DNA from: Glycera tridactyla
Taxonomy: Eukaryota
DNA length: 64,000 nucleotides
Reading direction: 5' to 3'
Assembly (NCBI GenBank): GCA_965644265.1
Contig: OZ286477.1
Span: forward strand, 39,246,001 to 39,310,000
In this document: positions 16,755 to 17,206 of the stretch, one piece after another
How the letters are laid out: the number at the start of each line of letters is the position of its first letter
Position numbering within the stretch: the stretch's first letter is position 1
The notes under the pieces: model-generated
What the model was told of the DNA's origin: nothing
Seen by the model: the letters and a program-made list of their open reading frames with translations, nothing else
Database searches by the model: none
Program-made: the position numbers and the translations under genes

Positions 16755-17206
16755 GAATGCGCCGAGTGCCGTGTCCGTGGAGACCGTAAACGCCGAGTAG
16801 CGATCCCCGGGGACGCGCGAGTGGCCGGAGGCCACGAGTGCGTCCCCGGAGATCGATACGAGGCGTTTATGGACTCCACGGACACGGCACGAGGAGCATT
16901 CTGGACTTATCATCCGATAAATGGATAGAATAATGAATCAGCTTCAATTTGGTGTTTAGATTGTGAAAATCGGACCACTGGTTGCTGAGATATGGTGATT
17001 CTTGTAGAGGTATCCTTCCTAACATCTGCCGTGACGGGATACTGATCGAATGTGCGACACGGCCAGTTGACCCTTGACCTCGATTGTTTCGCTGTTTGAG
17101 TAAGCGTAAACAACACGTGATTTACGCTATTGAATTAAAGCACGGCAGCGAGGCGGGAGGGTAGACGGCGTGAAAATACCCACTAGACTCTATATCGGAT
17201 GATAAT
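16755..17206. mobile_element. Family B element: 147-bp indel-free hairpin (16755-16901) followed by a segment bounded by the inverted repeat ttatcatccgata (16907-16919) / tatcggatgataa (17193-17205)
   Basis: 72-bp arms with 60 of 72 positions complementary around a c(GGA)g loop, read directly from the sequence. Confidence 0.75.

Follow-up and report, generated by a model that had tools for sequence, protein, structure and literature searches.

A conserved, strand-asymmetric hairpin at the end of a probable Crypton-type non-autonomous element in Glycera tridactyla

A stretch of 64,000 nucleotides from Glycera tridactyla (contig OZ286477.1, positions 39,246,001 to 39,310,000, forward strand; hereafter, the window) contains a long imperfect hairpin with mismatches of very different kinds on its two strands. 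The locus raises the question of whether this asymmetry was left behind by the decay of a palindrome or is maintained by selection and, in the latter case, what kind of element carries it. Here we propose, with a probability of about 0.8, that the hairpin forms the conserved end of a non-autonomous element of Crypton type and that it is selected and strand-asymmetric.

The hairpin comprises 149 nt of the + strand (16754-16902), with arms at 16754-16826 and 16830-16902 and a GGA loop at 16827-16829. Each arm is 73 nt in length and free of indels (72 nt without the outermost A-T pair). Twelve stem mismatches are present on the + strand, of which eight are G·A or A·G (16761/16895, 16764-65/16891-92, 16795-96/16860-61, 16800/16856, and 16819-20/16836-37), two are G·T (16786/16870 and 16817/16839), one is A·A (16783/16873), and one is C·A (16806/16850); the number of pyrimidine-pyrimidine mismatches on this strand is zero. 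Six of the G·A pairs are arranged in three tandems, each with CGAG opposite CGAG. On the + strand, tandem 1 lies at 16764-16765 (CGAG 16763-16766 against CGAG 16890-16893), tandem 2 at 16795-16796 opposite 16860-16861 (CGAG 16794-97 and 16859-62), with the single G·A pair 16800/16856 three pairs further in, and tandem 3 at 16819-16820 opposite 16836-16837 (CGAG 16818-21 and 16835-38), where it adjoins the apical GGCC-GNA-GGCC. In a DNA fold, the + strand hairpin reaches -74.1 kcal/mol, with z = -15 by comparison to shuffled sequences, and the - strand hairpin reaches -67.0 kcal/mol. The structure far exceeds chance. An earlier note on this DNA had described the arms, the makeup of the 12 mismatches, and the three CGAG/CGAG tandems, all of which are borne out by our recount and by the DNA fold. 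Tandem sheared G·A pairs and GNA triloops are unusually stable in DNA, and the complementary C·T tandems are destabilising.

No other long hairpin was detected in a scan of the whole window. Its other features include two very large open frames on the - strand, one of 4003 aa with EB-module and cEGF repeats (51202-63213) and one of 2327 aa with 19 DUF7107 repeats (28255-35238), as well as smaller EB-module ORFs at 39373-40155 and 44701-45402. These giant and small frames look like a cluster of genes for cysteine-rich repeat proteins. A run of 995 N at 26069-27063, which is either masked sequence or a gap, is responsible for a local dip in GC content.

The hairpin occupies one end of a non-coding element of 458 bp (16748-17205). 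Thirty copies align from 16747-16750 to 17205-17206 with different flanking sequence in each, and contigs from public sequencing runs, which cover the repeat only and not the unique flanks, depart from it at 16747/8 and 17205/6. Read along the + strand, the element begins with the six-base tail TTAGAA between element end and hairpin foot (16748-16753), followed by the hairpin, the four-base spacer GGAC (16903-16906), the internal 13-mer TTATCATCCGATA (16907-16919), a body of about 270 bp, and the terminal 13-mer TATCGGATGATAA (17193-17205), the last base of which is the other end of the element. In the sense orientation, which corresponds to the minus strand of the window, the order is TTATCATCCGATA first, then the body, the inverted 13-mer, 4 nt, the hairpin, and last the 6-nt tail TTCTAA. 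The internal 13-mer is an inverted copy of the far end, and an exact-match search of the window found the 13-mer at 16907 and 17193 only. Together with position 16920, the internal copy forms a small palindrome, TTATC-ATCC-GATAA, and it is located 89 nt past the hairpin apex in nearly all copies. The tail is TTAGAA in 27 of the 30 copies and TAAGAA or TGAGAA in the other three. The element body has a variable joint at 17090-17099, where one sub-subfamily carries 52-62 extra bases. No target-site duplication was observed at the three loci L008, L014, and L019, and the L008 copy sits within an unbroken (ACAG)n run. To the right of the element, positions 17209-17600 of the window are repetitive as well and are covered by contigs of the same public runs, with many joints and with loose ends at 17277 and 17468.

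The 2.04-Gb genome contains at least 28 copies of the hairpin at 100% identity. The apical 21-mer, with either a GGA or a GCA loop, has 1511 exact matches distributed equally over both strands, compared with 0 for a reversed control. A 24-mer made of the tail plus the start of the hairpin has 709 matches, whereas the same tail joined to the inverted hairpin ("flop") has 3, none of them exact. The G·A asymmetry is therefore fixed relative to the element ends, without flip/flop heterogeneity. The terminal hairpins of parvoviruses and AAV are comparable in that they are long terminal palindromes in which conserved mismatches make the arms functionally unequal, but the viruses possess both flip and flop forms as a result of hairpin transfer, unlike the family described here, which moreover carries no viral gene. 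Given hundreds of identical copies, the 458-bp element family is young, and an active source element is thus likely to exist. Head-to-tail copies in direct contact occur at some loci, among them L010 and a B-then-A pair in L006 (for the subfamilies, see below). Composite or nested copies are frequent in this family (also in L006, L010, and L073/L074); for example, L062:1293-1656 contains a C-type hairpin with its 13-mer, and a complete B element follows after only ~65 nt.

The copies fall into three subfamilies that are 75-82% alike, A (to which the window copy belongs), B (master copy L078:1507-1656), and C (master copy L062:1293-1441, identical to at least eight copies). Based on an alignment of A, B, and C, 22 of 66 stem pairs are altered on both sides and still paired; neither any of 500 shuffles nor any of six slid registers comes close to this degree of double-sided change. 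The three tandems, tandem 1 among them, and the single G·A pair 16800/16856 occupy the same positions in all three subfamilies, and the loop is GGA or GCA. Tandem 2 is retained in A and C despite a change from T-A to C-G in a flanking pair, and subfamily B has AGAG at this position, which is still purine·purine. The C master has A·A at one tandem, and in B one tandem is extended to three purine·purine pairs. The A mismatches 16761/16895, 16783/16873, 16786/16870, and 16806/16850 are Watson-Crick pairs in C. Both the stem pairing and the one-strand mismatches are thus selected and not a product of decay. The earlier note had asked for copies to be collected and a consensus to be built; the consensus contains the tandems, the palindrome in it is imperfect, and its mismatches are neither random nor strand-symmetric. 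Selection of the one-strand mismatches, as claimed there, is upheld by the tandems in the consensus of A, B, and C and by two unrelated hairpins, described below, with the G·A pairs on the same strand each time.

What the element does at its insertion sites bears on the machinery that moves it. Across 62 independent insertions of A and B elements, the six host bases beside the hairpin tail resemble TGATAA, which is the element's own far end; in the sense orientation this corresponds to TTATCA, its first six bases. Position -2 is A in 45 of the 62 insertions, and 16 of them have at most two mismatches to TGATAA; the corresponding frequency at control offsets is 4.2% (p = 5e-9). In three of the 62, the insertion point coincides with the end of a resident copy. 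Such target mimicry is consistent with site-specific exchange through a short core common to both partners, which has been proposed for Cryptons, and does not fit the T|T rule of Helitron2 elements (HLE2).

The head-to-tail junction in L010 has the sequence that a circle junction would have. When this junction is folded, pairing between the terminal and internal 13-mers gives the hairpin a basal stem of 12-13 bp below an asymmetric internal loop in which TTAGAA, unpaired in this fold of the joined ends, lies opposite GGAC. The breakpoint GATAA|TTAGAA is at the top of the 13-mer stem. Extrusion of the hairpin leaves no more than 10 nt between the two 13-mers. Joining of the ends and folding or extrusion of the hairpin are both required for the 13-mers to form paired inverted repeats.

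A link to a candidate enzyme came from a second, different hairpin of 146 nt, termed H2 (L030:1255-1400, corresponding to G000:C11:30658207-30658352), which contains two CGAG/CGAG tandems. At L030, an A copy is broken at the equivalent of window position 16993|16994 by a longer element, of which H2 is the first feature, 3 nt from the junction; this interruption of an A copy by an H2 element is unique to L030. Upstream of H2, L030:1-400 contains ~195-bp tandem repeats. The stretch C11:30,652,000-30,658,400, in which H2 lies, has a sister of 99% identity at C40:29,958,000-29,964,400. We initially considered L030 as a coding copy of subfamily A and rejected this interpretation, as the locus is a recombinase element of family H2 inserted in an A copy. 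L030 thus ties the hairpin architecture, and not subfamily A itself, to a recombinase. The 701 bp beside H2 were represented by 40 scored copies, of which 23 lie 1.8-4.3 kb downstream of same-strand PF12012/DUF3504 ORFs of 438-647 aa, and none of the 40 has a match to a RepHel rolling-circle transposase nearby. Based on the 23 of 40 copies downstream of DUF3504 ORFs, H2 appears to end a mobile unit that carries a predicted recombinase. DUF3504 is the tyrosine-recombinase domain of Cryptons and the sole recognisable domain of animal Cryptons (PMC3212892). The genome contains 990 candidate sites for PF12012/DUF3504, many with open frames of 450-650 aa; 150 of these 990 were scored, and the recombinase is represented by Pfam matches of 86-114 bits in open frames that span 438-658 aa. 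H2 is the only family that can be oriented relative to an ORF, and its G·A strand is antisense to the recombinase ORF; this position tells nothing about which strand a tyrosine recombinase would use.

A further hairpin belongs to family E, an 824-bp non-coding element inserted in the A copy of L003 at the equivalent of 17011|17012 (~1758-2581 of reverse-complemented L003, with the A hairpin start as base 1501). This element begins with the 5' 12-mer TTCTCTCACGAC and has the inverted 12-mer directly before a hairpin with 81-nt arms, in which the only mismatches are two CGAG/CGAG tandems, in addition to one small internal loop; the loop at the apex is GCA. Family E also carries (CT)n and (GT)n runs. 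The sequence just ahead of the E hairpin resembles that ahead of H2, and E and H2 both have their G·A pairs on the strand that corresponds to the G·A strand of hairpin A. An extended likeness, C-CGAG-T/G-TG, surrounds CGAG across A, E, and H2. A third insertion, at L021 (~1783-2738 of the reverse-complemented locus), lies in another A copy, around the equivalent of 17031-17035; it is a 956-bp element bounded by classical terminal inverted repeats (CAGGTCGCGGAAAACC...). The A element has thus received three independent insertions within one 40-bp stretch.

The five hairpins, from two unrelated sequence groups, thus follow one design with one strand polarity, and one of them lies in an element predicted to encode a recombinase. 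All are long and imperfect (146-165 nt), and in four of the five families a GNA triloop is closed by C-G. The assignment of A, B, and C to Cryptons is based on this architecture common to H2 and E and should be understood as a prediction. The search for autonomous partners suggested in the earlier note was successful in part: it yielded DUF3504 ORFs for H2, and no DUF3504 match within 10 kb of ~220 sampled A, B, and C hairpin positions when these were compared with the 150 scored of the 990 candidate sites. Likewise, no coding ORF was found beside the hairpins at L030, L069, and L075. When the positions of the ~220 A, B, and C hairpins were cross-checked by eye against the 150 DUF3504 and 104 RepHel matches, the only co-locations were on C11, which is the H2 element, and on C1, which involves a RepHel ORF.

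Several properties of these elements agree with Cryptons, in particular with CryptonA of animals (Goodwin 2003; Kojima & Jurka 2011, PMC3212892). A family of the same architecture carries a DUF3504/tyrosine-recombinase ORF, there is no target-site duplication, and non-autonomous copies are far more numerous than coding ones. In addition, 6 bp are common to the element end and the host flank, and the 4-6-bp direct repeats of Cryptons have been taken as recombination substrates (PMC3212892). By contrast, animal Cryptons are described as having neither terminal repeats nor conserved non-coding sequence (PMC3212892), whereas the element reported here has a terminal (17193-17205) and a sub-terminal (16907-16919) inverted 13-mer and a long G·A hairpin, unlike published Cryptons. 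The 13-nt inverted repeat departs from the published description of Cryptons and not from their definition, which is based on the enzyme. The words "hairpin" and "palindrome" do not occur in PMC3212892 or PMC13465315. Because the Crypton literature that was searched reports no terminal repeats in animal Cryptons and does not mention hairpins, a hairpin-built, strand-asymmetric end is new for a Crypton-type element.

Crypton movement has never been demonstrated, the recombination sites are unknown, and the ends are said to lack repeats (PMC3212892). For the element described here, we envisage that a recombinase would join the two ends, either as a circle or as a tandem junction. The two 13-mers would then pair, or flank the extruded hairpin, to form the recombinase site, with the breakpoint atop the 13-bp stem, and exchange would take place with a TTATCA-like pseudo-site of the host. 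The one-sided purine·purine mismatches and the GNA loop would render the two strands of the palindrome unequal, with stable sheared G·A pairs on one and open C·T bubbles on the other. By analogy with the extrahelical bases of integron attC sites, this inequality may allow the machinery to distinguish strand and polarity. Whether the hairpin acts as single-stranded DNA is a separate matter, and we consider this possible at somewhat less than even odds. The full proposal is that animal Cryptons recombine via a folded, strand-specific hairpin in which the joined ends form one long imperfect structure, its basal 13-bp stem serves as the recombinase site, and the conserved sheared G·A tandems, along with the GNA triloop, identify the active strand; we put it forward tentatively, with the odds against it.

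The closest analogues of such a mechanism would be the integron attC site, of which the folded bottom strand is recognized by IntI, and the forked hairpin of CTX-phage attP(+), which is recombined by XerCD. Like the element, they combine an imperfect hairpin with a tyrosine recombinase, conserve structure more strongly than sequence, and have conserved non-Watson-Crick features on one strand; their crossover lies in a basal stem of two inverted boxes, as would be the case here. Bacterial attC sites comprise 57-141 nt, with extrahelical bases and an unpaired central spacer, and their use as a single-stranded substrate was proven experimentally. Unlike the hairpins reported here, attC sites contain no tandem G·A, and for our element single-strandedness is something that we infer.

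The main competing explanation retains the Crypton-type element and assumes that the hairpin works as a duplex, either as an extruded cruciform or as a set of six same-direction CGAG motifs that bind protein and provide polarity, without a single-stranded intermediate. Tyrosine recombinases usually bind duplex sites composed of two 11-13-bp inverted repeats (PMC3212892), and a site of this kind may form here when extrusion of the hairpin brings the 13-mers together. The CGAG sequence is kept on both arms, and its surroundings are similar across A, E, and H2, as would be expected of protein-binding motifs. The computed energy gap between the strands is also small: with the DNA parameters of ViennaRNA, which have no special term for sheared G·A, the advantage of the G·A strand is a modest 0.5-7 kcal/mol across the five hairpins. 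However, a sequence motif alone predicts neither the GNA triloop with its C-G closure in four of five families nor the single purine·purine mismatch on the same strand as the tandems. Moreover, compensatory change extends over ~70 bp, which a simple row of binding sites does not need. On balance, we regard a role as duplex only as a serious rival, though less likely than not.

Much less probable is that the element is a non-autonomous Helentron/Helitron2 (HLE2) and that the hairpin serves a RepHel rolling-circle transposase as its 3' stem-loop terminator. This identity was dropped after the DUF3504 coordinate tests and inspection of the target-site logo, although the resemblance in layout is considerable. 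HLE2 elements such as HINE and DINE-1 (PMC4067079, PMC7492417, PMC11417382) have palindromic terminal and sub-terminal inverted repeats of 12-13 nt and a stem-loop after the right repeat, lack a target duplication, occur as tandem copies, and reach very high copy numbers. The general HLE2 scheme, in which terminal inverted repeats measure 12-16 nt, a stem-loop follows the right-hand one, and the target is not duplicated (PMC11417382, PMC4067079), agrees with the 458-bp element, which also forms head-to-tail copies. The genome contains more than 100 Helitron_like_N matches with intact ORFs, and on C1 the L057 ORF (DUF6570 and Helitron_like_N) is positioned 4.4 kb upstream of an A/B-type hairpin in matching orientation. 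However, this lone co-location is near chance, given that ~0.9 would be expected within 6 kb for 104 Rep matches and 1511 hairpins, and the 13-mer is absent from all 30 RepHel loci searched (1.5 kb on each side of the Rep domain). Insertion does not follow T|T, as T is found at base -1 in 24 of 62 insertions and at base +1 in 26 of 58, and L008 inserted between C and A; instead, the target copies the element's own first six bases. The family of the same design is associated with tyrosine-recombinase ORFs in 23 of 40 copies and with RepHel in 0 of 40. Known HLE2 stem-loops are short palindromes of 5-10 bp (PMC4067079), and neither these nor T|T insertion holds for the 458-bp element, for which a Rep/helicase partner is improbable as well. 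Between the candidates named in the earlier note, the results thus favour the non-autonomous derivative of a Crypton, based on the DUF3504 link and the TTATCA target, and speak against a Helentron. The similarity in layout matters in practice, since annotation based on structure could misfile thousands of copies as HLE2.

The RepHel ORF at L057 (G000:C1:148488636-148492241, minus strand) is an unbroken stretch of 1202 codons of a 1870-aa frame comprising DUF6570, Helitron_like_N, and the start of a P-loop helicase. RepHel-type matches number more than 100 in this genome, with open frames of up to 2837 aa, which suggests active Helitron-like elements. Canonical Helitrons (HLE1) have the form 5'-TC...CTRR-3', with a hairpin of 16-20 nt about 11 nt from the 3' end, and insert between A and T. 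An HLE1 identity was rejected for the 458-bp element, the sense strand of which reads TT...CTAA, with flanks that are not A/T and a hairpin of 149 nt.

Almost no weight can be given to three other readings, namely a perfect palindrome in decay, a foldback repeat, and an RNA hairpin that is transcribed, for example as the precursor of a microRNA: the repeat is covered by contigs from runs guessed to be RNA, and there are weak Rfam matches (mir-B6 at 32 bits, gathering threshold 89, as the best, and MIR531 at 27 bits, threshold 70), but no Rfam family reaches its gathering threshold in a scan of the hairpin, which has a fixed place in a bounded mobile element and an orientation fixed at 709:3. 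Decay is refuted by the mismatches themselves, which belong to a consensus shared by hundreds of identical copies and persist across A, B, and C.

In conclusion, we report here an element of probable Crypton type in G. tridactyla that supplies base-exact ends, a candidate recombinase site of two 13-mers, a TTATCA target motif, and a hairpin with an asymmetry kept across families. If recombination indeed proceeds through the folded hairpin, this would parallel, in a eukaryote, the recombination of integron attC or CTX-phage attP(+) sites. The features defined here make Crypton movement accessible to experiment, through strand-specific binding, cleavage, and transposition assays with defined mutants.
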